The translations under genes and the position numbers were made by a program. The notes below the pieces were generated by a model. The model did no database searches, had not been told where the DNA came from, and saw only the letters and a list, made by a program, of their open reading frames with translations. From the sequence record OR805293.1: DNA of 64,000 bases. The stretch is one strand, 5' to 3'. This document shows positions 12,174 through 62,369 of the stretch, one piece after another. The stretch's first letter is position 1. Every line of letters starts with the position of its first letter.

Positions 12174-12344
12174 AATTTAAATGCTTTTTACAGTTGCTGC
12201 AAAGCATGCAAAATAACGCATACGTAAACAGCACAAAACACGCGCATAATGCGTTGTTTGTGTGCTTTGTGTATACTGCACTAGCATGCAAACTAGCATG
12301 CAAAATAACGCATTTTTGCAGCTATAACGCTAGGGGTACGCATT
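12174..12344. other. GA/TC-dinucleotide-free intergenic tract
   Basis: 171 nt with no GA and no TC. Confidence 0.85.
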
Positions 12345-12546
12345 CCTACAAATATAATAATTTGCTAGAATGATGTATATTTTTAAATTCTAAATTTAAC
12401 CTATCCTATAATATACATTACGGAAATGTTACAATTAAAAATTTTATTATCTCAGACTTTATGCACATTCAATCTTATAATACTATATTAAATACAAATA
12501 TATTTATTGATTTGCAAGTAACATTTAACAAACGGAGTATATTTTA

Positions 12547-12870
12547 ATGGTCTCTGTTAATATACCGTTAATTGTATCTAATAAAATATATAAAATGGAA
12601 TTTGAATATGGCAAGGATGATGTGTTATATTTGTGTATGTATAGTGACAATAATACATATCTACATAATATAATAGTCAATACAGAATTTTCTATGCTTT
12701 TTGTTCAATGTATGGGTAAAACTATACCACTAGAATCGATATTATATATCCAGTCAAATATAAAAACAATAAGTGTGACTGATGATTATGGCTGTATAAC
12801 CCTACATAACGATACATTTTGTTTATGTACTGGATATTTTCAGGAAAAAGTTAAATTTTTTGCAGATTAA
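12547..12870 (+). CDS. small AT-rich hypothetical protein
   Basis: ORF track; GGAG RBS. Confidence 0.6.
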   Translation: MVSVNIPLIVSNKIYKMEFEYGKDDVLYLCMYSDNNTYLHNIIVNTEFSMLFVQCMGKTIPLESILYIQSNIKTISVTDDYGCITLHNDTFCLCTGYFQEKVKFFAD

Positions 12871-12872
12871 AT

Positions 12873-13199
12873 ATGAATGAACAAATTATATTATGTTTTC
12901 AAGCATGCATTAATAAATTTGCCTACTTAGGAAACCCAAAAATAAGATTATTTAGAATCGGTAAAAGTGTCAAGATATCTGCACGGAATTATAATAATAT
13001 GGATATAGGTTCGTTTGACAGTAATTTGAAATTTTTATTATATATCGATAGTATCCAAGATATTGGAATATATGATGAAAATTTTATATTTTATATATCA
13101 ATAAATTCAGACGAAATATCATTTTTGGGTTCTACAGGTACAGCACAAGTAGATACTGAACTTGGAATTACTATATTCTTTACCCGCACCAAAACATAA
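12873..13199 (+). CDS. small hypothetical protein (ILxLQ family-like)
   Basis: IILCFQ start; LLYIDS in second half. Confidence 0.6.
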   Translation: MNEQIILCFQACINKFAYLGNPKIRLFRIGKSVKISARNYNNMDIGSFDSNLKFLLYIDSIQDIGIYDENFIFYISINSDEISFLGSTGTAQVDTELGITIFFTRTKT

Positions 13200-13208
13200 T
13201 CCTAAATT

Positions 13209-13466
13209 ATGATATTCATTGCACAGCGACTATTATATAACATAACATATAATAAAAATACAATACTGTTCGGTTGTTTTAATAGTGGATATTTTTTAAT
13301 TAATAGAAGAAGTGGTATTGGATTCTTATTTACAGATATATGTATGAAACGAATAAAATGCATTTATTTCATATTATATATTTCGCGTAATACTAATACT
13401 ATAGGCAAAGATGCAATCTATATTAAAGATTTAGAACTACTCAGAGCAATGCACATACTTCGATGA
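13209..13466 (+). CDS. small hypothetical protein (ILxLQ family-like)
   Basis: MIFIAQ start; ILYISRNT in second half. Confidence 0.55.
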   Translation: MIFIAQRLLYNITYNKNTILFGCFNSGYFLINRRSGIGFLFTDICMKRIKCIYFILYISRNTNTIGKDAIYIKDLELLRAMHILR

Positions 13467-13771
13467 ATATAAATTTAATACTGCTACTTCAAAGATGTAC
13501 GTCTGTAATAGGAGGATTCCAACGCGGCGGCGCAACACTTATCCATATTTATAGTGATTTTAATTTATCTGCTATAATGACGTTATACAAAAGAAGATGC
13601 AAATGCATTGTATTTACTGACATTTTGTTTAACGACATTAAAGACGGTTCTATAGATATCATTATCTATATAAGTAAGAATGCAAACCTAATACACGATA
13701 AATTTGCCTACATAGACACATCTGTTACAGATGAATCTTCTGTTCCTTTACACGATATGACAGGAATATGA
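13463..13771 (+). CDS. small hypothetical protein (ILxLQ family)
   Basis: LILLLQRCT start; IIYISKNA in second half. Confidence 0.6.
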   Translation: MNINLILLLQRCTSVIGGFQRGGATLIHIYSDFNLSAIMTLYKRRCKCIVFTDILFNDIKDGSIDIIIYISKNANLIHDKFAYIDTSVTDESSVPLHDMTGI

Positions 13772-14253
13772 ATAATCCTATATATAATTTTATACTTGCA
13801 AGACGAATATGCAAACGGTATAGAATAAAATTCAATCCTTTTGTAAAATTAGATACAGGAAGTTTACAAATAGATAACGCAGATAAAATAACAGTTAGCG
13901 TAAATGTATTTAATAGTAATTTTATACCTATATTTTGGCACGAAATAGGGCATTATATTCATCATACATTAGTTAATTATAAAATTTATTTAGATTACTA
14001 TACTCCTATTTGTCCTACACACGGGTATCTTTTATATAATAAGACACAAGATTTTTATAAATGTCTTTATTCCGAAATGTTTGCTAGTAGATTTGCACTA
14101 AAGGTATGCGGAGCAAAACATAAGAAATACCTCATAAAATGTTTTCACACATACACTTCTGCTGCATTTAAAACCAACATCGCCAGCCAATCCAAATTTA
14201 CAAGATTTGTAGATTTTGTAGAAAAACTTTCTAGAAAATTAGATAGATATTAA
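13768..14253 (+). CDS. HExxH metallopeptidase-like protein (ImmA/IrrE-like)
   Basis: FWHEIGHYIH ... SEMFASRFA. Confidence 0.6.
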   Translation: MNNPIYNFILARRICKRYRIKFNPFVKLDTGSLQIDNADKITVSVNVFNSNFIPIFWHEIGHYIHHTLVNYKIYLDYYTPICPTHGYLLYNKTQDFYKCLYSEMFASRFALKVCGAKHKKYLIKCFHTYTSAAFKTNIASQSKFTRFVDFVEKLSRKLDRY

Positions 14254-14256
14254 TAT

Positions 14257-14451
14257 ATGAACACTTATGATTATATAAGACAGAATAACGACAAAATAGT
14301 TACATTTGAAACCATATTACATATAAGCAGTAGAAGTAGAGTAATAAGACTGCATTACAATTTTAGTTATATTTTACAACGAATGTCTCTAATTCTACCA
14401 GATAAACGCGGGAACCTGGTAATTAAATACTTTTATTACCGAAGTGTATGA
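14257..14451 (+). CDS. small hypothetical protein
   Basis: ORF track. Confidence 0.4.
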   Translation: MNTYDYIRQNNDKIVTFETILHISSRSRVIRLHYNFSYILQRMSLILPDKRGNLVIKYFYYRSV

Positions 14452-14538
14452 AATATATTTCGTGTATATTATATAACTTTCTGTTCACTACTTATATAAA
14501 AGTACATTCCAAAAATATTGTAAATATAGTATAGTTTT

Positions 14539-14760
14539 CATATAAAAGTATGCGTATAATTTGCACATATAACGCAATAGCACAGCAACAAACAAAACGT
14601 AATAAAAAAATGTTGCAATAGCTTAAAAGTTTTAGTATAATAAGCACATAACAACGCAATACAGTTTACAAACAAAACGTAATAAAAAATGTTGCAATAG
14701 CTTAAAAGTTTTAGTATAATAAGCGTATAATGCAGCTTATATAACAAGTTAAAAACCCCT
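14539..14760. other. GA/TC-dinucleotide-free tract containing the tRNA promoters
   Basis: 222 nt with no GA and no TC (includes an internal duplication). Confidence 0.85.
14613..14720 (+). promoter_or_regulatory. tandem duplicated sigma70 promoters for the tRNA cluster
   Basis: Two copies of TTGCAA-tagcttaaaagttttag-TATAAT (14613-14641, 14692-14720), each with an upstream A-tract; period 79 bp. Confidence 0.85.
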
Positions 14761-14833
14761 CGGTAGCTCAGTTGGTTAGAGCGCGCGACTCATAATCGCT
14801 AGGTCACTGGTTCGAATCCAGTTCGAGGGACCA
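14757..14833 (+). tRNA. tRNA-Ile2 (CAT, lysidine type)
   Basis: Cloverleaf; anticodon arm GCGA-CT-CAT-AA-TCGC as in bacterial Ile2; CCA encoded. Confidence 0.85.
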
Positions 14834-14855
14834 ATTTTAAGATGTTGTGCTTTTA

Positions 14856-14940
14856 GCCCGAGTGGTGAAATTGGTAGACACAGGAGACTTAAAATCTCCC
14901 GCTTCGCAGCGTACCGGTTCGAGTCCGGTCTCGGGTACCA
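14856..14940 (+). tRNA. tRNA-Leu (TAA)
   Basis: Cloverleaf with long variable arm; CCA. Confidence 0.97.
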
Positions 14941-14990
14941 AACAAAAGATATAAATACTTAACAAGATAGGAAACTATTCTAAAATTAAA

Positions 14991-15066
14991 TGGCTAGTAG
15001 CTCAGTTGGTAGAGCAAGTGACTGTTAATCATTGGGTCGTAGGTTCGAGTCCTACCTAGCCAGCCA
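14991..15066 (+). tRNA. tRNA-Asn (GTT)
   Basis: Cloverleaf; TGGCTAG/CTAGCCA acceptor stem; CCA. Confidence 0.97.
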
Positions 15067-15092
15067 ATTACACTTTGTTGTATATTCAATAT

Positions 15093-15168
<76 letters not shown>

Positions 15169-15237
15169 ATTTTAAATAACATTTGTATCTAAAGAGATAC
15201 AATAGTCTAAATAAAATATTCATATAATGTTTCAAAC

Positions 15238-15314
15238 GGGACTTTAGCTCAGTTGGTTAGAGCGCGCGACTCATAATCGCTAGGTCACTGGTTCGAATCC
15301 AGTAAGTCCCACCA
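15238..15314 (+). tRNA. tRNA-Ile2 (CAT), second copy
   Basis: Body identical to 14757 copy; different acceptor stem GGGACTT/AAGTCCC; CCA. Confidence 0.85.
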
Positions 15315-15364
15315 ATTTTTATATACAAATCAAACTATACTTAAACTATATAATGAATGAATAT

Positions 15365-15449
15365 GCCCGGTTGGTGAAATCGGTAGACACAGGAGACTTA
15401 AAATCTCCCGACGAAAGTCGTGCCAGTTCGAGTCTGGCACCGGGCACCA
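15365..15449 (+). tRNA. tRNA-Leu (TAA), second copy
   Basis: Cloverleaf with long variable arm; CCA. Confidence 0.97.
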
Positions 15450-16391
15450 AACTCCTACAAAAGGAACATATTATAGTATGTTCCTTTTTTATTATGATAT
15501 TTTTATTATGAATGAAATAATGCATATATCTGCCAACACATACGTAATAGAATATCGCGTATTAAACAAGTTAGTAGTCACTATAAAAAATAATAGATAT
15601 TTTACATTATGGGTACATTTTGATATCGGTACATTTTCTATGGCATGGAAATACAATGCAATATAGAATTAAAAAATGAAATACATTATTAATTTACAAT
15701 ACTCAACAGAAGTAATATATATGCCGTGTTTCAACATAATATCGTTATGCGATAATAGATCTGTTACTATCCTTTCTATTACTATGATATTTAAGATAAG
15801 ATACTATTTGCATCCGATGTTCCGTTATATTCTATAATACATAATATTTTTATTGTAACAAATACCAGAAGTGCTTAGATAATATATAGCAATTCTGTTT
15901 ATTATCGATATTGCGGTATACTTAGTATTTCTTATTAACCGTATTACATAGAATAAAGAATGGAAAAAATTTTAACTATTTCACATAAAACATTAATATG
16001 TGAACTGTCGTTATTAAACTGGTCGAAATCCATAGTTTGTGCATATTCTGGCGAAATAATATGGTATGTTCGGTTGCATAAGAAATGTTATGTAGTACAG
16101 CTAAGATGATAATGAACTGTATTTTTTCCTATTCGTACTATTTAGAACGCATCGTATGTCATGCAAAAATCTACAAAGGGTTTGTAGTCAGTAAAAATAC
16201 TTTTTGTGAGAAATCCGTAATAGCTTTATACTTAATAAATAGTGGTAGTTATTTTCATAAATGTTATGTCGATCATTACTTAATTGTATAGATATATTTT
16301 AATAAAAATAGTTGACCGAACAAACAAAACAGTATATAATGTTACGCATATAAAGCATTATTACAAAGCTATCATTAGTTGCACAAGATAT

Positions 16392-16468
16392 GCGCTCGTA
16401 GCTCAGCTGGATAGAGCATCCGCCTTCTAAGCGGATGGTCGGGGGTTCGAATCCCTCCGGGCGCGCCA
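16392..16468 (+). tRNA. tRNA-Arg (TCT)
   Basis: Cloverleaf; CCA. Confidence 0.97.
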
Positions 16469-16488
16469 ATTTTAAAGAGTGTTGTGTT

Positions 16489-16719
16489 ATGCAAACAATA
16501 AGATTTGACATAAGACTTCTTCGTTATAGTATGAAACAAGGTTTCTGTTGCATAGGTAAAGATATATTTGAAGTGTGCAGAAAAACTCGGATCAGTCCAG
16601 GTCAGCTAAACTTACGAAAAAATTATATAGGACGAGTATTAATCGGAATTGATTCGAACTACAATCTGCACAATACCTGTTTAGTAGGCTGGACTCGCTA
16701 TAAAAATATTATAGTATAA
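16489..16719 (+). CDS. hypothetical protein
   Basis: First ATG after tRNA-Arg within ORF 16435..16719. Confidence 0.5.
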   Translation: MQTIRFDIRLLRYSMKQGFCCIGKDIFEVCRKTRISPGQLNLRKNYIGRVLIGIDSNYNLHNTCLVGWTRYKNIIV

Positions 16720-16736
16720 AAATTTATATTAATAAT

Positions 16737-16979
16737 ATGAATAGATGCAAAGAACATCTACAATACAGAACAATCAAAAAGCATACATTAACTTGTAGGA
16801 AATGCAAAGAGTTATCGTTACAAATAAAATTATTTTGGCTTCAACAACAAGCATTCAGTATTAGAACCGATACTAGCGGAATATACATATTCGATATTAA
16901 ATATAATTCTATTTACGTATACTCTGTAGCTTGGTATAATACAGAATTATACGGTAAAGGGAAAATAATTTTAGAATAA
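16737..16979 (+). CDS. small hypothetical protein
   Basis: ORF track. Confidence 0.45.
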   Translation: MNRCKEHLQYRTIKKHTLTCRKCKELSLQIKLFWLQQQAFSIRTDTSGIYIFDIKYNSIYVYSVAWYNTELYGKGKIILE

Positions 16980-17007
16980 ACATGTATATATAAGAGTACC
17001 TCAAATA

Positions 17008-17340: not shown

Positions 17341-17363
17341 ATAATATAACAATATAGTTTTAT

Positions 17364-21498: not shown

Positions 21499-22137
21499 AT
21501 GTGGCAACAGCGTTGGGCATTAGTTGGAGACTCTATCCAGGCATGGGTATTAGAAAATAGTAATAGTGGTATTATTCCGAGGGCAGATAAACTCACTGCA
21601 TCTATGATACCGTTTAAAGTAAACGCATCTATACAGAACGTGTCTGTCCCGGGCATGCGTTTAGCAAAAGGAACTGATCCTAGTGATCCGTTTGATATTT
21701 CTTCATTAAGCAAATTACATGGATTTTTCGGGTTAAACGGAGTTGTGTGTACATTAGGTACAAATGACTACGGAAGTCCATATGTAACTACAGTCGATTA
21801 TTTTCATGCTTTAACTGATTTTTTGAATGCAGCAATATCGTTAACCATACCTGTTGTAATTGTTTCGCCTATATGGCGACAAGATAAGGATACATCTGTA
21901 TTAAAATACGACGGAACGACTAATGTACTTGCAGATTTTCAAAATACAGCACAATGGGTTACTTCACTTGTTTCTGCTAATAATAGTAATGTCTATTTTA
22001 TAGATGGGAAACAAGCACCTGTCCAAAATGCAACATATTTTGGTGATGGATTGCATTTAAATGCTGCCGGACATGCTAAGTTTTGCACATGGTTAGTAAA
22101 TGAAATGAAATCCAAAAATCTTTGGCAACAATATTAA
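21499..22137 (+). CDS. SGNH/GDSL hydrolase (esterase)
   Basis: Blocks LVGDSI, NVSVPG, LGTND, DGLHLNAAGH; AGGAG RBS. Confidence 0.9.
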   Translation: MWQQRWALVGDSIQAWVLENSNSGIIPRADKLTASMIPFKVNASIQNVSVPGMRLAKGTDPSDPFDISSLSKLHGFFGLNGVVCTLGTNDYGSPYVTTVDYFHALTDFLNAAISLTIPVVIVSPIWRQDKDTSVLKYDGTTNVLADFQNTAQWVTSLVSANNSNVYFIDGKQAPVQNATYFGDGLHLNAAGHAKFCTWLVNEMKSKNLWQQY

Positions 22138-23962: not shown

Positions 23963-24259
23963 ATGGCAAATATAATTAAAATGAAACCGGTATTGTACTA
24001 TGTAGGTGATAATCCCAAAGGGGCATTTTTGTGCGAAATTTATGGCAAGGAATACCCATTTATCAATAATGAAACTAGATTTATTAAAGTTAATTCTATT
24101 TTTTATATATCTTTTATATCTGCTAAGTATACATATATAAAATTTCTAGTTAGATATAGATTTGTTACATGGAGGTTATACGACACTGATATTTATATTT
24201 CCTTTAGTAGAGCTATGACATCCGTTGAGCGGGAAATTAATAAAATAAGAGGAATTTAA
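23963..24259 (+). CDS. hypothetical protein
   Basis: ORF track. Confidence 0.55.
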   Translation: MANIIKMKPVLYYVGDNPKGAFLCEIYGKEYPFINNETRFIKVNSIFYISFISAKYTYIKFLVRYRFVTWRLYDTDIYISFSRAMTSVEREINKIRGI

Positions 24260-24395
24260 AAAATGCGTTATTTTGCACGTTTGCATTATGCTATACGCAA
24301 GTTTGCAATAACGTGCAAACGCATGTATAACGCTAATACAGCTAACAATACAGTGCATAAAAACATGTACAGCATACTAGCGTTACAACGCATAT
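24253..24395. other. GA/TC-free (also GG/CC-free) tract with promoter TTGCAA-17-TATAAC (24303-24331)
   Basis: 143 nt with no GA, TC, GG or CC. Confidence 0.85.
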
Positions 24396-24562
24396 CGTTG
24401 AACTATAAATGTATATATATCTGGAGCAATATGGTATTCTTGTCAGTCACTACTGATGATACCTTAACTACATATCATATATATAGAAAAAGTTTAAGAA
24501 CTGGTTTAGAATCGTGTAATTTTTCTTATGTACTTGGATTAGTTATGAAGGAAGGATATTAG
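24365..24562 (+). CDS. small hypothetical protein (ILxLQ family)
   Basis: MYSILALQRI start; the upstream ORF extension is the promoter tract. Confidence 0.5.
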   Translation: MYSILALQRISLNYKCIYIWSNMVFLSVTTDDTLTTYHIYRKSLRTGLESCNFSYVLGLVMKEGY

Positions 24563-30321: not shown

Positions 30322-30390
30322 CTTTTTCAGTTGCTATAACATGCACAATGTGCAATAATAAAAAACAATGTGCAATTGTGAATAAAATAC

Positions 30391-30696
30391 ATGAATATTA
30401 TCATTAACATTCAAGCATCAACATCCGAAATCTTCTTTGATACAGACTGTATCTCGTTAATGACTAGCTTAAGCGGTTATGTTCTTTCGATAAACCGAAG
30501 AACAGGAAAAGGCGCAGTTGTACTTCATAACATAAAGTTAGATTCCATATATCGTATTCTACTATTACAGCACACAACTACATCACTTGTTGTATGGGGT
30601 GCTATAGACATTAAAGTATCATTTAAAGACATAGCCGATGAATACATTTTCCTTGCTATAGGAAGAAGATATTATCACGGCGAATGGTTAAAATAA
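30391..30696 (+). CDS. array small protein
   Basis: MNIIINIQAST start; ILLLQHTT in second half. Confidence 0.65.
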   Translation: MNIIINIQASTSEIFFDTDCISLMTSLSGYVLSINRRTGKGAVVLHNIKLDSIYRILLLQHTTTSLVVWGAIDIKVSFKDIADEYIFLAIGRRYYHGEWLK

Positions 30697-33935: not shown

Positions 33936-33974
33936 AGCAATGAAGATGAATGATAGAAATCACTACACTATAAC

Positions 33975-34370
33975 TAATGAGTGATAATACTCTAATAGAT
34001 AGAAACTATAGTGTACAAATAATGAGTGATAATACTAATAGAAGCTATAGTATACAAATAATGAGTGATACCAATAGATGGTGAATAATGAGTGATACTG
34101 AGTGATACTAATAAGATAGTGATAGTGTACAAATAATGAGTGAATTATATAGTACATATTTCGGTGAATACTGATATAATATCAATAGATAGCTATAGTG
34201 TACAAATAATGAATGATAATACTAATAGATAGTGATACTGACAGATAGCTATAGTGTACAAATAATGAGTGATAATACTGATAGATACTAATACTAATAC
34301 TGATACTAATAGATAGCTATAGTGTACAAATAATGATTGAATTATGTAGTACATATTTCGGTGAACCCTA
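33975..34370 (+). repeat. iteron-like modular direct-repeat array (candidate replication origin)
   Basis: CTATAGTGTACAAATAATGA-type copies at 34006, 34045, 34120, 34193, 34249, 34317; TGAATTATRTAGTACATATTTCGGTGAA at 34141 and 34338. Confidence 0.85.
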
Positions 34371-34394
34371 ACATCACCAAAGAAAGAAGGACCA

Positions 34395-41289: not shown

Positions 41290-41317
41290 TAGACAAATAA
41301 GTACATTATGCTAATAT
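41290..41317 (+). promoter_or_regulatory. sigma70-like promoter
   Basis: TAGACA-16-TAATAT with extended -10 TG. Confidence 0.65.
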
Positions 41318-41323
41318 ATGCAT

Positions 41324-41740
41324 GCTTACTAAACAGTTACTTGTTAAGTAAGTTAAAAAGTCTGTAACAGTGATGTTACAGGATACACAGGCAAATACGG
41401 TTGGAAGATGCTGTGTAAAGAACAAATATCCAGCTCATTCCTAGGCATTATAGCCTACACAATATACTTGAATGGGCATAAAAACTTCCAAAGAACCTTC
41501 GAAATTTTCTCATAGGATAGTGTATTAGAAGGAATGCACTATCAGGAAGCTGTAGGTGATGGTTGCTATCCCAGACAGTCCTTTCTAAAATACTTTAATA
41601 TGATATAAAGTTCTATGCAACCGTATACATGCTGTAAGATATTAGATTACACCATGTATTAAACGTAAAAGCAAAACCTTCAGTTAGTAATCTCGCAGTG
41701 AAGGGGGTAGGTGAGTGCTACCCAAACTCAACAAACAACT
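41324..41740 (+). ncRNA. candidate structured ncRNA or long 5' leader (ncRNA-1)
   Basis: No ORF >=60 aa; promoter; multiple stems (see findings). Confidence 0.5.
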
Positions 41741-42230: not shown

Positions 42231-42415
42231 GTTTCCAAATTCAATTTTAGGCACAAACTCGGATCCGCATTTGCATTTTGCATTTACATTTTGTGTTCTG
42301 AGTGTATATGCAAAATGCAATCGCGCATGTTGTCGATGCATTGGCTAATCTTTTATTTTTGATAGTTTAGAAAAGATTAAGAACAGAAACTATCTGTAAA
42401 TTAATAAAAATAACA

Positions 42416-42444
42416 TTTACATTACATACACATATGCATATACT
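42416..42444 (+). promoter_or_regulatory. sigma70-like promoter
   Basis: TTTACA-17-TATACT. Confidence 0.75.
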
Positions 42445-42450
42445 ATATAC

Positions 42451-42728
42451 AAGTTATGCGCTGTTGCATACGTAAATACCTCCTATGTTGTTTAGATATG
42501 TCGATTCTGGTATAACCAGATAGACCTAAGGATGATGCTAGTGATTCCTTAGTATTGTATATTCTAGCTGAGTATAAAGAGTAAGGGGCTTTATACAAAT
42601 AACAATTCCCTAGGCAAGATATACCGCTCCGTTGTGCTGACGAGCATAATTTGCCCAGATACAGAGCACGTGACTGGTCTGAGGAGCATTTATATCAGAA
42701 AGGCAGACTTATGTTTGCCTTTCTTTTT
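42451..42728 (+). ncRNA. candidate ~275-nt structured ncRNA (ncRNA-2)
   Basis: Bounded by promoter and terminator; no credible ORF; several stems and a possible pseudoknot. Confidence 0.65.
42697..42728 (+). terminator. intrinsic terminator
   Basis: AGAAAGGCAGAC-ttat-GTTTGCCTTTCT followed by TTTT. Confidence 0.85.
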
Positions 42729-42790: not shown

Positions 42791-42930
42791 ATTTCATTTG
42801 TTATTGCAAATAAGAATTAGTCTTATTTGCGTTTGTAATTTCATTTGTTATTGCAAATAAGAATTAGTCTTATTTGCGTTTGCAACGAAAAAGAATATGC
42901 AAATAATAACTAATCTTATTTGCATTTGCA
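42791..42930. promoter_or_regulatory. cluster of three palindromic boxes (GCAAATAAGA-N5-TCTTATTTGC)
   Basis: 45-bp perfect direct repeat 42791-42835/42838-42882, third box at 42898-42924. Confidence 0.75.
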
Positions 42931-43302: not shown

Positions 43303-44007
43303 ATGTCCGTACATATCACTCGTCAACGTACCGACAAACAGCACGTCCTGGCACTGGCAATCAACGGCGTGGTCATCGGCCAGACTATGGCTACTTACAC
43401 CACCCCGAGCAAGCGCACCTGGTCGGCGACCGCTGAAGTCGAACTGGCAGACGGCACCGTCGTACAGTTCGAGCAGAAAGAAGTGTTCAGCGCGATCCGC
43501 ATCACCCGCGAAATCGAGCAGGCGCTCGACGGCAAGGAACTGGCGGCCAAGTACACCCCGGAACCGAAAGTTCCCGGGCAGAAGGGTCCGAAACCGCTCA
43601 CCGACGAAAGCCGGCTCAGCAACGCGATCGCGATCGTCAAGGCGGCCATCACCCACACCGGCTTCGACGAAGCTACCCTGGTGTTCGACGGGGTCGACAA
43701 GGCCAACTTCGAGCAGAACAGCACCTCCGTCGGCAACAAGCTGCGTCGCCTGGGCTTCGTCTTCGAACTCGGCGCCGGCAAGGCGAATAGCGGCAAGGGC
43801 TTCCTGATCAACCGCAAAGCGCAGGCCGAGGCAGAAGCTGCCGAACGCAAGGCCAAGCGCGATGCCGAGAAGAAGGAACGCGAAGAAAAAGCGGCGGCTG
43901 CCAAGCGCGAAGCTGACGAACGCAAGGCCAAGCGCGAAGCCGAACGCGCTGAAAAGGTCGCTGAAAAGAACGCAGCGATCGCCGGGGCAGCGCAGGAAAG
44001 CAAGTAA
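43303..44007 (+). CDS. very GC-rich protein with Ala/Lys/Glu/Arg-rich C-terminal tail; paralog of 62563..63018
   Basis: GAGGT RBS; host-like codons; shared NGVV.GQ...VQF.Q..VFSAIRI domain. Confidence 0.9.
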   Translation: MSVHITRQRTDKQHVLALAINGVVIGQTMATYTTPSKRTWSATAEVELADGTVVQFEQKEVFSAIRITREIEQALDGKELAAKYTPEPKVPGQKGPKPLTDESRLSNAIAIVKAAITHTGFDEATLVFDGVDKANFEQNSTSVGNKLRRLGFVFELGAGKANSGKGFLINRKAQAEAEAAERKAKRDAEKKEREEKAAAAKREADERKAKREAERAEKVAEKNAAIAGAAQESK

Positions 44008-45413: not shown

Positions 45414-45533
45414 ATTTTGCGGGGTATGCGTTACAAGCAATACACACATACTGCTTTTAAAATGCATGCTTACATGCGCTTTGTAGGGGGTTTAAAACAT
45501 GCTTAAATTAGTTACCACTGTGCTATACAACGT
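45414..45533. other. GA/TC-free tract
   Basis: 120 nt with no GA and no TC. Confidence 0.8.
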
Positions 45534-49830: not shown

Positions 49831-50325
49831 GTGTTCGAGATGGAGCAAATAGTGAATATGCGAGAAGTGACATTTCTTTCCGCAGTGGATGCCAGCAAGA
49901 TCGAGACGCCGAGCAACGTCATCAGCATCGGCAGCAAGGGTGATTGGTATGCCTTTGCCTGCGATCACAAGCGCGTTCTGCGGCTGGAGTTTGATGACGT
50001 AGACGGATACGTGGGAAGCGATGGCTTTCGAGTGTTCAGCCACATTGACGCCAAGCAGATCCACGACTTCGTGAACGAGTGTGGTGATGAACCGATCATT
50101 GTTCACTGCCAAGCAGGCATGAGCCGATCCGCTGCGGTTGCCAAGTTCCTAGCTGACAAGCGCGGCTACACCTTGAACCTGTCGAAGCCTTGCTTAGGCA
50201 CTACACAATTCTACAACCGCCACGTCTACGGAACGTTGAACCTCAACAACGCCGAAAGCATGAGCGCCTATTACGCAGAGATGGAGCTAGCCGACCGGAC
50301 GCGTGGCCATCCAAAGGAGTCCTGA
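49831..50325 (+). CDS. protein-tyrosine/dual-specificity phosphatase-like protein
   Basis: Active-site CX5R motif IIVHCQAGMSRSAAVA; upstream LEFDD acid loop. Confidence 0.88.
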   Translation: MFEMEQIVNMREVTFLSAVDASKIETPSNVISIGSKGDWYAFACDHKRVLRLEFDDVDGYVGSDGFRVFSHIDAKQIHDFVNECGDEPIIVHCQAGMSRSAAVAKFLADKRGYTLNLSKPCLGTTQFYNRHVYGTLNLNNAESMSAYYAEMELADRTRGHPKES

Positions 50326-50327
50326 TC

Positions 50328-50627
50328 ATGCCTGACATGAGAGAAGAGTTTGAAGCCGCAATCTTTGCGGAAGTGAATGAACAGCGGGCTGCTGAAGGTG
50401 AATTTGTCCTTCAGCATCCAGAAGGGCTATTTGCCCGCGATGACGATGGCTCCTACTTGATCCGTTGGGTCAAGAGCGCATGGTGGGCCTGGCAAGCCAG
50501 CCGCGCAGCTCTGAGAGTGGAGTTGCCGAAACCTCACCCTGCATTTGAGTACGCACCTAGAGCCAAGGTTTTCAATATAACTGACGTTGAGGTAGCCCTC
50601 CAGCAAGCCGGAATCGAGGTGAAGTGA
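50328..50627 (+). CDS. hypothetical protein, temperate-phage-like
   Basis: AAGGAG RBS, ATG 50328; MREEFEA...AWWAWQASRAAL pattern. Confidence 0.75.
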   Translation: MPDMREEFEAAIFAEVNEQRAAEGEFVLQHPEGLFARDDDGSYLIRWVKSAWWAWQASRAALRVELPKPHPAFEYAPRAKVFNITDVEVALQQAGIEVK

Positions 50628-55815: not shown

Positions 55816-55945
55816 ATGCTTTATAACGCATAAATTTACATAGCTAATACATACATATTGCTAACGTTAAAAAGCGCATTATATAGCTTATAATTGCATA
55901 TTGTGCAATGCATTTGTTGGTGTTATATTAAACATGCGCAACAAT
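55816..55945. other. GA/TC-free tract
   Basis: 130 nt with no GA and no TC. Confidence 0.8.
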
Positions 55946-56457: not shown

Positions 56458-56610
56458 ATGCTTATTTAAGTAAATGCATAAACAGGTAACTGTATAAAGA
56501 ATAAGGAAAGATTAGATCTTGTCTGTAATAGTTATATATTTTTCAATGTAATATTCTTCATTTTCATTGCATGTGTTACAAATTAGATCACAAAAAGTTT
56601 TAAAATTCAG

Positions 56611-56639
56611 TTTACAGCATGCATAGTTTTACGTATTAT
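56611..56639 (+). promoter_or_regulatory. sigma70-like promoter
   Basis: TTTACA-17-TATTAT. Confidence 0.7.
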
Positions 56640-56645
56640 AAACAC

Positions 56646-57130
56646 ACAAAGCAATACAGCATAACGCATTGTAAGCAACACTAAACGGGAGACACCGTCC
56701 CGCAAGCAGCCCGCCCGCGATGTTCGCGGGCTGCGGCAAACAGGTGTACAAGGTCTAGTAACGTGGAAGGCGCAGCATACCTTTCCTTAAATCGGAAATC
56801 GGTCAATGACGTACCTGCCCCTGGACACTGCTAGACCTTGCTGCTACAGGCGGGACAGCTACAAAGGTACACTGTATGTATCTATGCTTTACCCCGCTTT
56901 GTAGCAGGTCTTAAAACGGTCTACTGGCATATGCCTTAGTGCTAGTAGGAATCATTAACCTAAAACTATTATATGCTTCCTGGAGGTGAAGAGTATGCCG
57001 CCGCAGCATTAAATATACATTATGATGATGATAATTATGAATGCCGAAACACCGCTTCGATTCGTTTAAAAGACAGATGTCTGAATCGAATGTTTTTGGG
57101 CAAAAAGGTCCCTTAGATGGGATTTTTTTG
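56646..57130 (+). ncRNA. candidate ~480-nt GC-rich structured ncRNA (ncRNA-4)
   Basis: Bounded by promoter and terminator; long stems; no + strand ORF >=60 aa. Confidence 0.7.
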
Positions 57131-57216: not shown

Positions 57217-57245
57217 TAACTCATAAATCCGCAGGAGTAGCAGTT

Positions 57246-57413
57246 ATGTCGCTGAAAAAGAAACTTTTAAATTCTGTGCAGATTAAATATTTCGGCAACA
57301 TTTATACTTACATTTATGATGCCGTTCATGACGTTATTTATTTCGATAACCAGCAAATGTCTTATGCCGAATTTGAAGAGGCAGTAGACTGTAAGCTAGG
57401 AGAAGTTCTGTGA
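57246..57413 (+). CDS. small protein (55 aa, not in ORF track)
   Basis: AGGAG RBS; stop overlaps next start. Confidence 0.7.
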   Translation: MSLKKKLLNSVQIKYFGNIYTYIYDAVHDVIYFDNQQMSYAEFEEAVDCKLGEVL

Positions 57414-57685
57414 ATGAATATGTTGATACACACAGAGCTAAAAGAATACTAATAATTTCTTCTATATGTTTTTTTGTAACTGGCATTCTGATAGGATACA
57501 GCCTAGCGTCGAATTCTGAGTCTGCTTCGTTATATATGCAGTATAAGGAACTTGTAAAGTCTTGCGAAGCAGAATTGCCAAGAAATGAAAATTGCCAAGT
57601 AATCGTATATGCTATACCAACACCCGAAGTAGAAGAAGAGAAACTAGAAATACAAACAATTCTTAGAGGGGTCGAAATAAAATGA
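57410..57685 (+). CDS. membrane-anchored small protein
   Basis: One TM segment; coupled. Confidence 0.7.
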   Translation: MNEYVDTHRAKRILIISSICFFVTGILIGYSLASNSESASLYMQYKELVKSCEAELPRNENCQVIVYAIPTPEVEEEKLEIQTILRGVEIK

Positions 57686-57918
57686 GCGTATACTGTAATT
57701 GCATAGCATGCGGTGGAGATGATCCGTATGCTGTATGTGAAAATGTGTTAATGGATATCCAAAAGCACAAATATAATACTGGTCCCAGCTGGGGGCTGGT
57801 AGTTGCGGCAGTATTGTGTTTGGTAGGAATGGGATTAGCAGGTAACGCAGCACTATCTGATAAAAAAGAAACACCGTGCGAAACTACACAACAAAAACAA
57901 GAGGTGTATAATGAGTAA
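57682..57918 (+). CDS. small membrane protein with Cys motif
   Basis: CNCIAC; one TM segment. Confidence 0.65.
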   Translation: MSVYCNCIACGGDDPYAVCENVLMDIQKHKYNTGPSWGLVVAAVLCLVGMGLAGNAALSDKKETPCETTQQKQEVYNE

Positions 57919-58117
57919 CAAAACAACAGACATGCTGGTAGATGAATTTCTGTGCGAGCGTGCATCTTTTTCTCCGTTTAGCGAAGGTGTTCATGCAGCT
58001 AAACTAGGGCAGAAATATACAGACTGCCCGTATACCAAAAATGAGCCGTATGAACGTAACGAATGGATTCGAGGACATCAAATGTGGCATGATTATTCTG
58101 TTCAACAATACAAATAA
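57911..58117 (+). CDS. hypothetical protein
   Basis: GAGGT RBS; G...CPY...WIRG pattern. Confidence 0.75.
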   Translation: MSNKTTDMLVDEFLCERASFSPFSEGVHAAKLGQKYTDCPYTKNEPYERNEWIRGHQMWHDYSVQQYK

Positions 58118-58132
58118 TATTCAGAGGATATT

Positions 58133-58336
58133 ATGAAGAAACTATCTATGTGCGATTTTGCCAAATGGAAGGCAAACTATTACAGCACTAATAAATCCGG
58201 TCAGCCACTCCGGCTAGGACAAGCATTTATTAACGAATTTTCCGAACAGGGTGATATGCCTCAGCCAAATCTATATTATGAAGAAGATAATGCAACTGCT
58301 GAGCTTATCATTCTAGAAAAATACATTATGTACTAA
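58133..58336 (+). CDS. hypothetical phage protein
   Basis: GAGG RBS; LRLGQAFIN motif. Confidence 0.75.
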   Translation: MKKLSMCDFAKWKANYYSTNKSGQPLRLGQAFINEFSEQGDMPQPNLYYEEDNATAELIILEKYIMY

Positions 58337-58346
58337 GGAAGTAGTA

Positions 58347-58541
58347 ATGTATCTTGCACACCTATTCGCTTTGGTCCCGTCTATGTTTGCAGTATTAATT
58401 AATGCTATCTTTATTAAATACGGTTTGGGACCTGCTTCTATAATAGTATTTATGGCCTTAGTTGTAACTGTAACAGGAATTGGGTCTGTAATAGATATGA
58501 TGCGTGCATTGTCTGAAGTAGACAATATTATTGATAGATAG
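58347..58541 (+). CDS. small membrane protein
   Basis: AAGGA RBS; two TM segments. Confidence 0.7.
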   Translation: MYLAHLFALVPSMFAVLINAIFIKYGLGPASIIVFMALVVTVTGIGSVIDMMRALSEVDNIIDR

Positions 58542-58866
58542 TATTTATGTATGCATAAGAGAACTTATGAAACTCAACGAAGTTACTACAATTTCTGATC
58601 TAGACAATATTCCTGTCACTGACAAATTTATAGTTGTCGGCGAAGATATGGTAGGTCTTGCTTTTATCGATAACGATGGAAAGTTAAATGATGGATTCTT
58701 TTTTGAGTGTACTTATACTCAGAATAAGGAACAAATATTTAAAGCTGTTCAACATTTAAAAAAACAAGTAGATGAATTAAATAATTGTAATAAAGAGAAA
58801 GTTATAGCACATATCATGCGAGCTCCTGAGTTTGCATATGTTTGGGTATACTTTGAACAAAAATAA
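58531..58866 (+). CDS. hypothetical protein (start possibly downstream)
   Basis: ORF track. Confidence 0.65.
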   Translation: MIDSIYVCIRELMKLNEVTTISDLDNIPVTDKFIVVGEDMVGLAFIDNDGKLNDGFFFECTYTQNKEQIFKAVQHLKKQVDELNNCNKEKVIAHIMRAPEFAYVWVYFEQK

Positions 58867-59148
58867 TAGTTCTATATTTTTTGATATATGCAAACGCAAA
58901 TAATTAGAATTTGCAGAACCTGTTACAAACTTTCTGTTTATATAAAATACAATCATGCTATAATAGTTTATAATAAAAATGTAAGCATATAGCACCAAAA
59001 GAACAAAGATGAAGTTCATTCTTTGTCTAAAGATTAAGTTTGCTGAGAATTTTGATAAGAAACTTCAACTGCTAGATATTATATCAATAGTGCATTTATC
59101 ATGCATTGAACAGAAAAGAAGTACTCTTTTATCTACGAGGAAAAGCAA

Positions 59149-59364
59149 ATGAAATACAAAATCATTCTTCAAAACCGTAGCAATGGTGTTGTCGCTGAAT
59201 TTTCGGTAGATAACGAAATTAACCCCGAGATCATGGATACTTCTATTATTGTTCATGAAGGGACATCGTATATGTTTACTGGCCAGCGCGGTTCTTACTA
59301 CGATATCCTTTATTTTAGTGAAATATATAAGACTATTAACACGACAGACTTGTCGTTGCTATAA
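59149..59364 (+). CDS. hypothetical protein
   Basis: GAGG RBS. Confidence 0.75.
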   Translation: MKYKIILQNRSNGVVAEFSVDNEINPEIMDTSIIVHEGTSYMFTGQRGSYYDILYFSEIYKTINTTDLSLL

Positions 59365-59437
59365 CAGAAAACGCTTTACAATAGCTCTAAATGTGCTATT
59401 ATGTAGTTGTACATAAAACAACGCAGGAGATTATATC

Positions 59438-59635
59438 ATGCGTAGCACACTCGGAGTAGAACATGCATCGAGAGAAATTCTTTCTGCATGGGTTGATGTA
59501 ATGCAGCAACTCAACTGTGAGCATTTCTATAGCGAACTGAAAGACAATGCAGTTCGCTTAGATTTACAGGAATATATGTATACTGAACGTCTCGTTCAGT
59601 ATTATACAGATCTTCCAGTCACTAATGCTGGTTGA
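59438..59635 (+). CDS. hypothetical protein
   Basis: AGGAG RBS. Confidence 0.75.
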   Translation: MRSTLGVEHASREILSAWVDVMQQLNCEHFYSELKDNAVRLDLQEYMYTERLVQYYTDLPVTNAG

Positions 59636-59665
59636 TGCCTTCGCCGGGCGTGAACTACATTTATT

Positions 59666-59777
59666 AGGAAAGGGGTTTTAAGCCCCTTTCCTTTTGATTG
59701 TTAAGTGTAAGTGCAAATTAATCTTATTTGCTTGTTACAATTTAGTTCTTGAATTCACACATAATAGTATGTATAGT
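59666..59777 (+). promoter_or_regulatory. terminator + palindromic box + promoter module
   Basis: Hairpin 59666-59695; box 59707-59731; TTGAAT-17-TATAGT (59749-59777). Confidence 0.7.
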
Positions 59778-59814
59778 TTTAATATATAAGATACCAACAT
59801 GCGAGGTTGTAAAA

Positions 59815-60267
59815 ATGAAACTTCATAATATGAATGGTAATATTTTTATTCGGTTTGAAGTAGATACTTCGTCGGATAATTTTGTAGAAAAAGTTTACGA
59901 AGAAATTATGCAGCTTCCTGCAAAATTGTATTTCGAGAAGATAGAACGTAGAACTTGGTTCTGTAGCTTTTACACAGGCTACGACGAATTGGTAGAATTC
60001 GTTAATGAAATAAAAGACAGAGTTAGTTCAGAAGGTGTTTTCTTTGACAGGCCATTGCAGCTAACTCTTATCAATTCGGGCGGGGTAGAAGTAAATATTT
60101 CCGATATAGAACCAGATCTTCACTATCTTTTTGATAACGATATTACAACTACAAAACTTATCTCTATGGAAGGATCGTGCAATATGGTAGATTTGCTCAT
60201 GTGCGAATGGGTACCTATTAACATTCGTACTTCTATTGCTAAGGCATTTACTGACAAATTTTTGTAA
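59815..60267 (+). CDS. hypothetical protein
   Basis: GAGGT RBS, ATG 59815. Confidence 0.75.
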   Translation: MKLHNMNGNIFIRFEVDTSSDNFVEKVYEEIMQLPAKLYFEKIERRTWFCSFYTGYDELVEFVNEIKDRVSSEGVFFDRPLQLTLINSGGVEVNISDIEPDLHYLFDNDITTTKLISMEGSCNMVDLLMCEWVPINIRTSIAKAFTDKFL

Positions 60268-60359
60268 TAAAATACCTGTTGACGCATATAGCAATATGCG
60301 CAATAATATGCACGAAAGCAAGAACAGATCCAAATAACCTTTTTATAAGAGATTATATT

Positions 60360-61007
60360 ATGTCTAAGTATCTTTCTTTTAGCGTAAACGTAGACATGGA
60401 CAACACTGGTCTGTTGAAATGGTTGCGTCCTACCACCGGTCGGTTGGATGGATTCGAAGAGAGTGTTAAAAACTTCGTTTCTTCTTTCCGCTCAGTCGAG
60501 TCGAGCCCTACGGTGTTTCAAGTTTACGATGACGATGATCAGCCGTTGCAAGTAAGCAACATGAGCTGCTTCTTCCGATACTTTCCGGTGTATGGTATGT
60601 GCCTTGCACCGGGTTCGATGGTCAGGGAACAATATCGTCGGGAGATCCTCGACTACACTACTGACGAGTTCTGTTCATTCAGTAACTACTTCAGTGACGG
60701 CAAGGCCATCCGCGGCGGGGCAGTCTTGTGGTGGGATGTAGAGAAAGACTTGGTATGGTCTGTTAGTCCCGAATTGATTCGCCTTGTATATGCCCGCTTG
60801 CAAAGTGATATGGACATCGGGTGGTATCATCTCGGGCAAGAAGTTATGGCTGTAGTTCCCCTTCGTTCGTATCCCAACGATGTTGCCCGATGGAAATATG
60901 TACAAGGTAATATCTGCGGCATCGACGATCAAGTGAGCATTCGCAGCAATGTCGACGGTCGAGTCACCCGGCTTAATTGGGAATACATCGTGACCCAAGG
61001 GGGATAA
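60360..61007 (+). CDS. GC-enriched hypothetical protein
   Basis: ATG 60360; GC rises sharply at the start codon. Confidence 0.8.
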   Translation: MSKYLSFSVNVDMDNTGLLKWLRPTTGRLDGFEESVKNFVSSFRSVESSPTVFQVYDDDDQPLQVSNMSCFFRYFPVYGMCLAPGSMVREQYRREILDYTTDEFCSFSNYFSDGKAIRGGAVLWWDVEKDLVWSVSPELIRLVYARLQSDMDIGWYHLGQEVMAVVPLRSYPNDVARWKYVQGNICGIDDQVSIRSNVDGRVTRLNWEYIVTQGG

Positions 61008-61008
61008 T

Positions 61009-61236
61009 ATGGGCGGTCTTGCTAATATAGTTGCATTCATAGCTTCTATTGTTGCAATTGTTACTGGAAATATCTGGTATTTTATCGCACTGTTGCTATG
61101 CACAGCATTTATGTCGCCCGAACGAAAAGGATCATTAATTGATGTATTTTCGGTCATTGTCGGGATTGGTGCTATATTTAACGGAGACATTGCATGGGGC
61201 ATAGTGTTCATAGCATTAGTGATAATAGTTAAATAG
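61009..61236 (+). CDS. small membrane protein
   Basis: Four short hydrophobic segments; GGGGGA RBS. Confidence 0.7.
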   Translation: MGGLANIVAFIASIVAIVTGNIWYFIALLLCTAFMSPERKGSLIDVFSVIVGIGAIFNGDIAWGIVFIALVIIVK

Positions 61237-61265
61237 AAAGGAAGGGGGTTTAACCCCTTCCTTTT
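61237..61265 (+). terminator. intrinsic terminator
   Basis: AAAGGAAGGGG/CCCCTTCCTTT. Confidence 0.85.
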
Positions 61266-61671
61266 ATTGTAGGTGTTAAATGTCATCAATTTTTTATCTT
61301 AGCAAATGGACAGAATACATAGTAATTTTAAACAATAAGAGAATAAGGTTAAGTACAGCGAAATATTCTATAGGATATGTATCACTAGAAACACCTCGTC
61401 GCACATTTTACTGGACACTTTTTAAATGAAATACAATAATCATATCTAATTAGCTACCTACATTTATATCAAAAACCATTCTATGAAATATATTTCCTAA
61501 ATCATATTACAAAAGTTATATTTGAATTTCGGATTCATATCTCAACCTTGCATTGCAATATAAAATGCGAATATGAGTGTGCTATATGTATTTGCATATG
61601 CATGTACATACGCATAAACGTATTAAGAAATACAATTTATTTTATCCTATACAATTATCTTTAATACCTAT

Positions 61672-62016
61672 ATGTTGTTTGATAATAAAAGTATAATAAG
61701 TAAAAGATATTATCCATTGTATAATGGTTTTAATATATTTCGCTGTAGTGTTGGATTTATATATTTTTCATATGATAAAATGTCATTTATTCACGACATA
61801 TTCATGCAAACCATTTCGTTGTTCCTTATGACGTTATTATTGTTTTTACTTATAACTCCGTTATATTATATAGGATTGAAAAATCCAGTCAATATAACTA
61901 CATTTGTTTCGTGTTTAATAATAACCATTCTTATAACAAGTTATTATTTTATGTCAGTTTTGACTTATATATTCTGTATTACTGTTCAGTCAATAATTTA
62001 TAAAAGAAAGAAATAA
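61672..62016 (+). CDS. hydrophobic hypothetical protein
   Basis: ORF track; very AT-rich. Confidence 0.4.
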   Translation: MLFDNKSIISKRYYPLYNGFNIFRCSVGFIYFSYDKMSFIHDIFMQTISLFLMTLLLFLLITPLYYIGLKNPVNITTFVSCLIITILITSYYFMSVLTYIFCITVQSIIYKRKK

Positions 62017-62028
62017 TTTAGTTTCTTT

Positions 62029-62094
62029 TTCATTATCTTTTTCATTATCTTTTTCATTTTCATTATCTTTTTCATTTTCTTTATCTTTTATCAT
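62029..62094 (+). repeat. 12-bp tandem repeat TTCATTATCTTT (3 exact copies plus variants)
   Basis: Copies at 62029, 62041, 62059; variant at 62071. Confidence 0.85.
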
Positions 62095-62213
62095 TGCAAA
62101 TACAAATAATAATTATTCTTATTTGCATTTAGTGATGTAAATAATTCTTATTTGTAATTGCGATTAATTCTTATTTGCTACAATAGATAGAATAAGAATA
62201 ATTCACATTTGCA
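62095..62213. promoter_or_regulatory. cluster of four palindromic boxes or half-boxes
   Basis: CAAATAATAAT-T-ATTCTTATTTG (62103-62125); TTCTTATTTG at ~62146 and ~62168; inverted AATAAGAAT at 62191. Confidence 0.7.
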
Positions 62214-62369
62214 ATGCCGCTAAAAGCGCTGTAAGCGCTGTATGTTGCGTAGTAATGCTAAGCAATGCATTAGTACAGCTACGCGCACAAACGCTGTTAT
62301 ATGCGCTTGTAGCGCGTTTTAGGGCCCATGCGCATGCGTACACCTGTAGCTTTACATAGCAAAATGCAG
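62204..62369. other. GA/TC-free tract
   Basis: 166 nt with no GA and no TC; GpC-rich. Confidence 0.85.

Follow-up and report, generated by a model that had tools for sequence, protein, structure and literature searches.

In the phages iggy and CAjan (Queuovirinae, Iggyvirus), guanine is replaced post-replicatively at 5'-GA-3' by a 7-deazaguanine (dPreQ0) through a DpdA enzyme together with phage-encoded FolE, QueD, and QueE. Iggy has a strict GA motif, about 97% of whose occurrences are modified, and CAjan is modified at both GA and GGC; the DNA of both phages resists restriction enzymes having GA in their sites (PMC10484667, PMC6884629, PMC10516641). The iggy paper also reports fewer GA sites in iggy than in CAjan. 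Here we describe long intergenic tracts devoid of the dinucleotides GA and TC (one class read on the two strands, written GA/TC below) in a 64,000-nucleotide stretch of DNA, the window, which matches positions 124001-188000 of Pseudomonas phage Deifobo (OR805293.1) with 100% identity. This phage belongs to the genus Wroclawvirus; it is a jumbo myovirus like PA5oct, with a genome of 288 kb at 33% G+C. PA5oct resembles iggy and CAjan in having FolE, QueD-like, and QueE genes, in the resistance of its DNA to enzymes with GA in their sites, and in a deficit of GA/TC in intergenic DNA and at synonymous sites; iggy also has GA/TC-free runs of 100-170 nt. The PA5oct-like phages differ in being 287-kb myoviruses dependent on host RNA polymerase and in having no recognizable DpdA or QueC, and their modified base is possibly a derivative of 7-carboxy-7-deazaguanine (CDG), with GG perhaps targeted as well as GA.

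The original prediction, made from the letters of the window, was that the tracts are modification-free or damage-proof windows in a genome otherwise modified or attacked at such sites. Whole-genome work was done on PA5oct (MK797984.1), since published coordinates use that phage; PA5oct and the window are 97.6% identical over a 4.5-kb stretch.

GA/TC-free tracts exceed expectation in length and number

The longest GA/TC-free runs of the window are 222 nt (14539-14760), 171 nt (12174-12344), 166 nt (62204-62369), 143 nt (24253-24395), 130 nt (55816-55945), and 120 nt (45414-45533), exactly at the coordinates given earlier. The 11 intervals checked contained 0 GA and 0 TC, the exception being 604-739, for which a single GA had been stated and was found. 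GA or TC occurs at a mean spacing of 10.4 nt in the window, in agreement with the earlier estimate of roughly one per 10 nt, and the equally frequent class AG/CT has a longest free run of only 80 nt.

The null used for PA5oct consisted of 100 shuffles within 300-nt blocks, which retain local composition. Eight GA/TC-free runs of at least 119 nt were observed versus 0.01 expected, the longest being 221 nt versus a maximum of 144 nt across all shuffles, whereas runs of this length free of AG/CT, AC/GT, or CA/TG numbered 0 (0.02-0.04 expected). Ten runs were longer than the geometric expectation of ~102 nt. A Markov chain trained on the GA/TC-poor intergenic DNA itself gave 0.0015 expected runs of at least 166 nt per 24 kb; PA5oct has three such runs genome-wide, at least two of which are intergenic. 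Runs free of AT, TA, or CC/GG reach 180, 249, and 304 nt, respectively, at GC-rich or low-complexity spots, but their excess over the block null is ~5-fold whereas that of GA/TC-free runs is ~800-fold. The block-shuffle and Markov results thus dispose of the objection that other dinucleotides behave in the same way. A loose spacing of the large tracts at 10-12 kb, which had also been proposed, did not hold for the run positions of the whole PA5oct genome.

Note that the long AT- and TA-free runs are due to G+C-rich stretches, which in the window lie at 43388-44005, 50009-50428, and 62618-63061 and go without AT or TA for 110-220 nt. One such stretch falls in PA5oct gp38, which codes for a virion 'structural protein'.

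A GA/TC deficit across the genome, with the tracts at its extreme

In the 136 annotated gaps between PA5oct genes (24 kb in all), GA and TC are found at 0.72 and 0.66 of expectation, versus 0.92 for AG and 0.94 for CT (pooled classes, 0.69 versus 0.93), and GC is at 1.59. When the 32 strand-symmetric intergenic trinucleotides were ranked, the eight rarest were exactly the eight that contain GA/TC (0.53-0.80; chance ~1e-7). GA/TC is low in the early, middle, late, and tRNA regions alike (0.60-0.74). An explanation based on early promoters only, or on timing gated by modification, was therefore discarded, the deficit being equally strong in the middle and late regions.

Relative to genes, the deficit is maximal 21-60 nt upstream of start codons. 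In the Shine-Dalgarno zone (the last 20 nt before the start) there are 144 GA versus 39 TC, GA being retained there because it is needed for RNA function. Coding sequences are also affected: among confident genes the fraction of synonymous codons that end in G is 0.14 before A and 0.15 before G, as compared with 0.28 before C and 0.26 before T, and C-ending codons are less frequent when the preceding base is T or C than when it is A or G. Avoidance restricted to windows, as first proposed, is thus too narrow a description, since all intergenic DNA and synonymous codon junctions are affected.

Securely non-coding gaps between large middle and late genes retain 60% of the expected GA/TC, whereas the clean tracts, 1.9 kb in total, retain 0%. 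Counts per gap are over-dispersed for GA/TC (chi2/df 1.47, p = 6e-4) and for no other class. The distribution is that of a general GA/TC shift plus a tail of near-empty gaps, and the tracts are the extreme of the genome-wide deficit.

Tract composition places the constraint at the dinucleotide level

As had been noted earlier, the tracts are not depleted in C and G, having 27-48% G+C compared with 33% for the genome. GC is present at 3.0 times expectation, and, GG/CC aside, G always precedes C or T and C always comes after G or A. The reported near-absence of GG/CC applies to only some of the tracts: the counts in the six long tracts are 3, 3, 0, 8, 1, and 6. The GG/CC that are present cluster as G4-5 or C4-5 (AACCCC/GGGGT), at 12328-12335, 14749-14756, 45420-45424, and 45486-45491.

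The tracts are mutually unrelated, with no matches between them and a 79-nt tandem duplication as the sole internal repeat. Given their own dinucleotide frequencies no k-mer was prominent, save the G4/C4 runs and a modest enrichment of ATAACGC on the + strand. RNA folding energies were ordinary (z of -2.2 to +0.8 against dinucleotide-preserving shuffles), and an Rfam scan returned nothing beyond 12 tRNAs. In the lack of a long motif, of paralogy, and of unusual folding, the constraint must act on the dinucleotide. Several other words are over-represented in PA5oct as a whole (TGCA 2.1, CCGG 2.3, and TTTGCA 2.5 relative to expectation), and GC stands at 1.2 within coding DNA and at 1.6 between genes.

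Substitution patterns point to selection

Alignment of Deifobo with PA5oct over 61 kb gave 1183 differences. G before A had diverged by 0.0227 and G before C, G, or T by 0.026-0.028; the value for C after T was 0.028 and those for the other C contexts were 0.032-0.046. As divergence of neither G(A) nor (T)C is raised, GA/TC is not hypermutable. The six long tracts contain 21 Deifobo/PA5oct substitutions, and 0 of these create a GA or TC in either genome (P ~0.002 for random placement). Tract lengths are conserved among relatives: the tract at 12174 is 171 nt in 6/6, that at 24253 is 143 nt in 4/4, and that at 14539 is 201-222 nt in six. The missing GA/TC-creating substitutions and the conserved lengths together point to ongoing purifying selection that keeps the tracts clean, and the earlier preference for selection over mutational erosion is borne out. 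The forms of attack proposed alongside it (a TC deaminase, DarT2 acting on TNTC, or ultraviolet damage) find no support, divergence by context and the frequency of TNTC both being against them. More distant relatives having syntenic tracts were not found in an IMG/VR scan that used the protein encoded beside the tract at 12174.

Several tracts cover predicted promoters

The window beyond ~34337 lies inside the 39-kb terminal repeat of PA5oct, which Lood et al. identified as the early region of a phage that requires host RNA polymerase (it is rifampicin-sensitive). Candidate sigma-70 promoters were scored as -35 and -10 hexamers having at least 9/12 matches and a 16-18-nt spacer. The tracts at 14539 (two sites), 42394, 55816, and 56608 contain such promoters, as does, weakly, that at 12174.

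The 222-nt tract (14539-14760) extends as far as the first tRNA in the tRNA cluster and owes part of its length to the 79-nt tandem duplication, which carries the putative tRNA promoter. The two copies read TTGCAA-17-TATAAT and are found at 14613-14641 (P1) and 14692-14720 (P2), both on the + strand. Within the cluster tRNA-Met and tRNA-Leu are also duplicated, with 82-93% identity (14741-14843 versus 15222-15324 and 14856-14901 versus 15365-15410).

Two shorter windows cover the predicted promoters and 5' ends of noncoding RNAs (ncRNAs) defined by RNA-seq. That at 42394-42481 (88 nt; PA5oct 8186-8273) belongs to ncRNA001, which starts at PA5oct 8263, and contains TTTACA-17-TATACT at 42416-42444 (+ strand). 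That at 56608-56689 (82 nt; PA5oct 21901-21982) belongs to ncRNA002, which starts at PA5oct 21951, and contains TTTACA-17-TATTAT at 56611-56639 (+ strand). The 5' ends of the two RNAs are 10-20 nt from the predicted starts of these promoters, and each RNA was reported to make up 1-5% of phage reads at every sampled time point. A third RNA, ncRNA003, starts within a 100-nt clean run, and thus clean runs, which make up 0.66% of the genome, include 3/4 of the RNA-seq-defined ncRNA starts. The use of TTGCAA or TTTACA in place of the usual -35 box, as predicted, holds for the four clearest tract promoters.

A 53-nt clean window (30328-30380) immediately precedes gp450 (30391-30696), the one gene named as early that lies beyond the terminal repeat. 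This clean window contains TTGCTA-17-AATAAT at 30331-30359, read directly from the sequence. The tract at 55816-55945 has TTAAAA-16-TATAAT at 55867-55894, and the tract at 12174-12344 lies between a gene at 11024-12109 and another at 12547-12870.

The candidate promoters in five tracts, with -35 and -10 hexamers spaced by 16-17 nt in a phage that needs host polymerase, resemble the sigma-70-type early promoters of T4-like phages. TTTACA-type -35 boxes occur in T4 early promoters. The promoters described here differ in that a footprint of RNA polymerase size or more lacks one dinucleotide class and in that a second set, of TTGACA type, lies outside the tracts.

Reported guanine modification in PA5oct

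A 2025 preprint reported that PA5oct DNA resists EcoRI, XbaI, BsaI, and BmrI, all of which have GA or GG in their sites, and concluded that G is modified 'in a GA and/or GG motif'. The preprint also reported QueE and PTPS genes in PA5oct and nucleases that restrict the phage by sensing modified G. From the ten enzymes tested, those that cut can be taken to be HindIII, FspI, BsgI, NdeI, and DraI, in whose sites G is found only before C or T or is site-terminal. ApaLI (GTGCAC) was the sole resistant enzyme without GA or GG in its site, but PA5oct has only 2 ApaLI sites in 287 kb and this resistance is therefore uninformative. Some enzymes, HindIII included, still cut DNA in which G has been fully substituted by 7-deaza-G, and the digest pattern alone is therefore no proof of context specificity. 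GTGCAC is also among the most avoided palindromes of PA5oct (2 versus 28 expected, 0.07), as is AGTACT (15 versus 50); the strongest palindrome avoidance hits sites lacking GA and GG, which a GA/GG-specific modification could not protect.

Genes of the 7-deazaguanine pathway are found at PA5oct 168449-171971 and 227441-228313. FolE, a GTP cyclohydrolase I, is EST35_0253 (3e-34 in tblastn with CAjan FolE; 1e-64 in phmmer with pf16 FolE). EST35_0254 is QueD-like (QueD being the CPH4 synthase) and has the CxxxHGH motif as CRHLHGH, and a second QueD-like paralogue, EST35_0258, has CSRIHGY and is the orthologue of pf16 QueD (1e-23). The DpdL motif LxxxHRHxF is present in neither of these two proteins. 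QueE, the radical S-adenosylmethionine CDG synthase, is EST35_0322, which is 60% identical to pf16 QueE (7e-119) and 100% conserved across 11/11 Wroclawvirus records. The PA5oct record gives electrospray ionization tandem mass spectrometry evidence for FolE and one QueD. No QueF was found in PA5oct, and the pathway, as judged from gene content, seems to stop at CDG. Since the tracts contain no GA/TC, the reported GA modification cannot occur within them.

The same avoidance in DpdA-encoding phages

A deficit caused by GA-specific modification of G ought to recur in phages of established GA motif and be missing from unmodified relatives, which served as an out-of-sample test. Among the 10 intergenic dinucleotide classes, GA/TC ranked lowest in iggy (0.58), CAjan (0.81), and 9g (0.80), which are 7-deazaguanine phages that encode DpdA, just as it was in PA5oct (0.69). 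The controls were not depleted: phage UB, which among phages outside the genus is the closest relative (capsid identity 67%, G+C 33%) and has no QueE, had intergenic GA/TC at 1.01, and the value was 1.06 for F8, a Pseudomonas phage reported to have hypermodified T in a TG context. At synonymous sites, G before A and C after T were disfavored in iggy and CAjan but not in UB. The longest GA/TC-free run of UB is 66 nt, and on this and its normal GA/TC level the idea that A+T-rich intergenic DNA of jumbo phages has the deficit as a generic trait was rejected.

Five GA/TC-free runs of at least 103 nt were found in iggy versus 0.01 expected. The terminal non-coding region of iggy (~700 nt) has runs of 152, 95, and 80 nt, whereas the long runs elsewhere in iggy are rich in G+C and consist in part of low-complexity coding sequence, unlike the A+T-rich regulatory DNA of the PA5oct-like tracts. 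G9 runs are present in the GA/TC-poor terminal non-coding region of iggy (60405-60445).

In F8 the lowest intergenic classes were AC/GT (0.83) and CA/TG (0.84), a weak hint that the same avoidance principle might extend to other modifications. As a test of the principle on TG context F8 was set aside, CA/TG being only the second-lowest class and its deficit too weak to count.

Other features of the window

The clean run at 604-689 (86 nt) is followed by one GA and then by clean sequence to 739; it has a terminator-like hairpin (AACGCGC..GCGCGTT) after the upstream gene. The tract at 24253-24395, which is free of GG/CC as well as GA/TC, is upstream of a tilS-like gene and overlaps the 5' part of a putative open reading frame (ORF) at 24263-24562. 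The remaining clean window, 41293-41361 (69 nt), lies in the early (terminal-repeat) region. The tract at 45414-45533 has two G4-5 runs, and the tract at 62204-62369 has 48% G+C and is rich in GCGC, TGCGCA, and GCATGC. Small ORFs, Deifobo_0191 and Deifobo_0198, are annotated over clean tracts in the Deifobo record (12152-12373, + strand; 14538-14747, - strand). These are probably over-calls because their codon scores are poor and they are absent or different in other annotations.

A direct-repeat array having units of 39-73 nt (CTATAGTGTACAAATAATGAGTGATAATACT...) occupies 33951-34374 and is labeled 'CRISPR' in the Deifobo record. The array stops exactly at the start of the PA5oct record, the left end of the 39-kb terminal repeat, and may have a genome terminus or packaging role rather than being a CRISPR. 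The early (terminal-repeat) region, and only that region, has a family of ~11 dispersed inverted repeats consisting of a core GCAAATAAGAATTAGTCTTATTTGC and then a T-rich tail. The sites are 42797-42927 (three tandem copies, just 3' of ncRNA001), 44613, 47633, 49040, 53896, 57135, 59698, 62093, 63063, and 63647, and the family looks like a terminator or operator.

Discussion

We consider it rather probable that the tracts are modification-free islands, kept by selection, in which regulatory DNA stays readable. In the proposed mechanism, G of virion DNA at 5'-GA-3', and probably also at 5'-GG-3', would be exchanged post-replicatively for a 7-deazaguanine derivative. Purifying selection would purge GA/TC wherever the sequence is free to change, giving the deficit of ~30-40% in intergenic DNA and at synonymous junctions, with a weaker per-site cost incurred genome-wide (precursor, enzyme action) producing the general deficit. 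About 15 intergenic stretches per genome, of 80-222 nt and without any GA/TC, would in this way stay unmodified within a densely modified genome. These islands, which would retain G:C pairs as GC, GT/AC, CG, and TG/CA only, would sit at operon boundaries and cover what appear to be the strongest host-RNA-polymerase promoters, those of the tRNA cluster, ncRNA001-003, and gp450. A 7-deazaguanine has no N7 and would place a substituent in the major groove, and it could thereby disturb protein-DNA transactions; the islands would let host and phage proteins read or open the DNA whether it is virion-modified or freshly replicated. Besides strong constitutive and early promoters, islands may perhaps mark other regulatory or initiation sites.

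Several observations weigh against this interpretation. The long tracts at 604, 24253, 45414, and 62204 have no sigma-70 consensus promoter, and predicted promoters are not enriched in clean runs (6/53 versus 8% of intergenic bases). Moreover, 21 canonical TTGAC-N16-18-TAnAAT promoters, most of them from the middle or late genome, keep the GA of their -35 box in DNA of near-normal GA/TC density, and thus a modified -35 G must be tolerated or used. Even here, with that obligatory GA excluded, GA/TC in the -50 to +10 region is only half of AG/CT, the ratio in the flanks being 0.74-0.85. GG/CC is at 1.07 in intergenic DNA and thus not depleted there, although it is depleted at synonymous sites. 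In CAjan the deficit is no more than mild, and long GA/TC-free runs are absent. The digest evidence is one preprint figure, which complete G replacement together with enzyme-specific tolerance of 7-deaza-G would also fit. Finally, the search for base-modification genes that had been suggested gave folE and queD, plus QueE, but neither queC nor DpdA at the sequence level. QueC (preQ0 synthase) of CAjan and pf16 had no convincing PA5oct match, the best (E = 0.004-0.03) being an unrelated small ORF. DpdA1 (CAjan), DpdA3 (immuto), and the pf16 deazaguanine-cluster proteins had no match by tblastn or phmmer, and no tRNA-guanine transglycosylase domain was found by Pfam searches of 40 PA5oct proteins or by PHROGs and NCBIfam searches of up to 20. 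DpdA3 and DpdA4 were originally recognized by HHpred only. The original notion of modification-free windows gains a phage family with 7-deazaguanine genes and reported modified G at GA/GG, but loses the idea that avoidance is confined to the windows.

Another possibility is minimization of site load, in which each GA costs a little, by precursor and enzyme demand, the risk of base exchange, or exposure to modification-sensing nucleases, and the tracts are just the least constrained non-coding DNA. It would account for the deficit in intergenic DNA of all temporal classes and at the synonymous sites of PA5oct, iggy, and CAjan, for the terminator hairpins and spacers within tracts that are also GA/TC-free, for the retention of GA where it is needed (Shine-Dalgarno sequences, TTGACA -35 boxes), and for the lack of promoter enrichment in clean runs. 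We nevertheless think it unlikely, though deserving of serious attention, because typical gaps retain 60% of the expected GA/TC while the tracts retain none over 1.9 kb, the over-dispersion per gap is confined to the GA/TC class, the tracts match three of four ncRNA starts plus the tRNA promoter, and the deficit is deepest within promoter footprints. Mutational erosion, in which modified G, a TC-specific deaminase, or ultraviolet light makes GA/TC hypermutable toward AA/TT, would explain a strand-symmetric absence that is greatest in non-coding DNA. It seems very improbable given that G before A and C after T diverge no faster than other contexts, that the tracts are not G+C-poor and are 3-fold enriched in GC, and that neighboring gaps differ in deficit.

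Phages do avoid restriction sites, GTGCAC in PA5oct being an example, and the tracts might be sequences that must never be hit by a host recognizer of a GA/TC motif, such as DarT2 acting on TNTC, a restriction enzyme, or a nuclease. However, TNTC stands at 0.72, not below ANTC (0.64) or GNTC (0.65), and the eight GA-containing trinucleotides are all depleted alike, so the unit is the bare dinucleotide, which is too short for a host recognition site. As the signature is also shared by E. coli and Pseudomonas phages that have only the deazaguanine system in common, we give host-weapon evasion very little credence. The missing dinucleotides might instead be a by-product of structured ncRNA genes or of arrays of one protein-binding motif, as suggested by the many short palindromes of the tracts (AACGCA/TGCGTT, GCATGC, TGCGCA), the two tracts that overlap ncRNA 5' ends, and the + strand ATAACGC enrichment. 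Ordinary folding energies, an Rfam scan that found tRNAs only, the scarcity of enriched k-mers beyond the G4/C4 runs, and tracts that match one another nowhere save for one internal duplication make this explanation hardly plausible. The interpretation as modification-free islands is therefore the one that we retain.

Two known phenomena bear comparison with such islands. In restriction-site avoidance by phages a short word is likewise removed by selection, as seen for GTGCAC and AGTACT in PA5oct, but here the avoided word is the target of the phage's own modification, is a bare dinucleotide, and is lost mainly from non-coding and synonymous positions. Vertebrate promoter CpG islands are regulatory DNA free of a genome-wide base modification. 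As a conceptual analogue they differ in that a CpG island retains its target dinucleotide and shuts out the enzyme, whereas the Deifobo tracts delete the target dinucleotide.

The modification chemistry and the GA-specific DpdA enzymes are already known. Avoidance of the target word in regulatory and synonymous DNA appears to be new, as we found no report of such counter-selection in a full-text literature search or in the iggy paper. We tentatively propose, as two linked readings that together are more doubtful than the islands themselves, that phages with sequence-specific hypermodification systematically delete the target word from their regulatory DNA, leaving islands where host proteins can read a genome that is masked elsewhere, and that Wroclawvirus exchanges guanine at GA and GG sites by means of an enzyme unrelated in sequence to known DpdA proteins, the base being derived from CDG without the help of QueC.

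Discussion of hypermodified bases usually goes no further than their role as a shield from restriction and CRISPR. The present data suggest that the shield carries a price within the phage's own genome, in that the target is counter-selected and is eliminated around the promoters most used by host polymerase. If this is true, the dinucleotides in deficit in non-coding DNA and at synonymous sites could reveal which motif an uncharacterized modification enzyme targets. For PA5oct-like phages the prediction would be GA and probably GG, with ~30% of G replaced if only GA is modified and ~47% if GG is modified too. The tracts would also allow tests of what 7-deazaguanines do to transcription and to other contacts between DNA and protein, and they draw attention to the insertion enzyme missing from a phage family now studied for therapy and for the killing of dormant cells.

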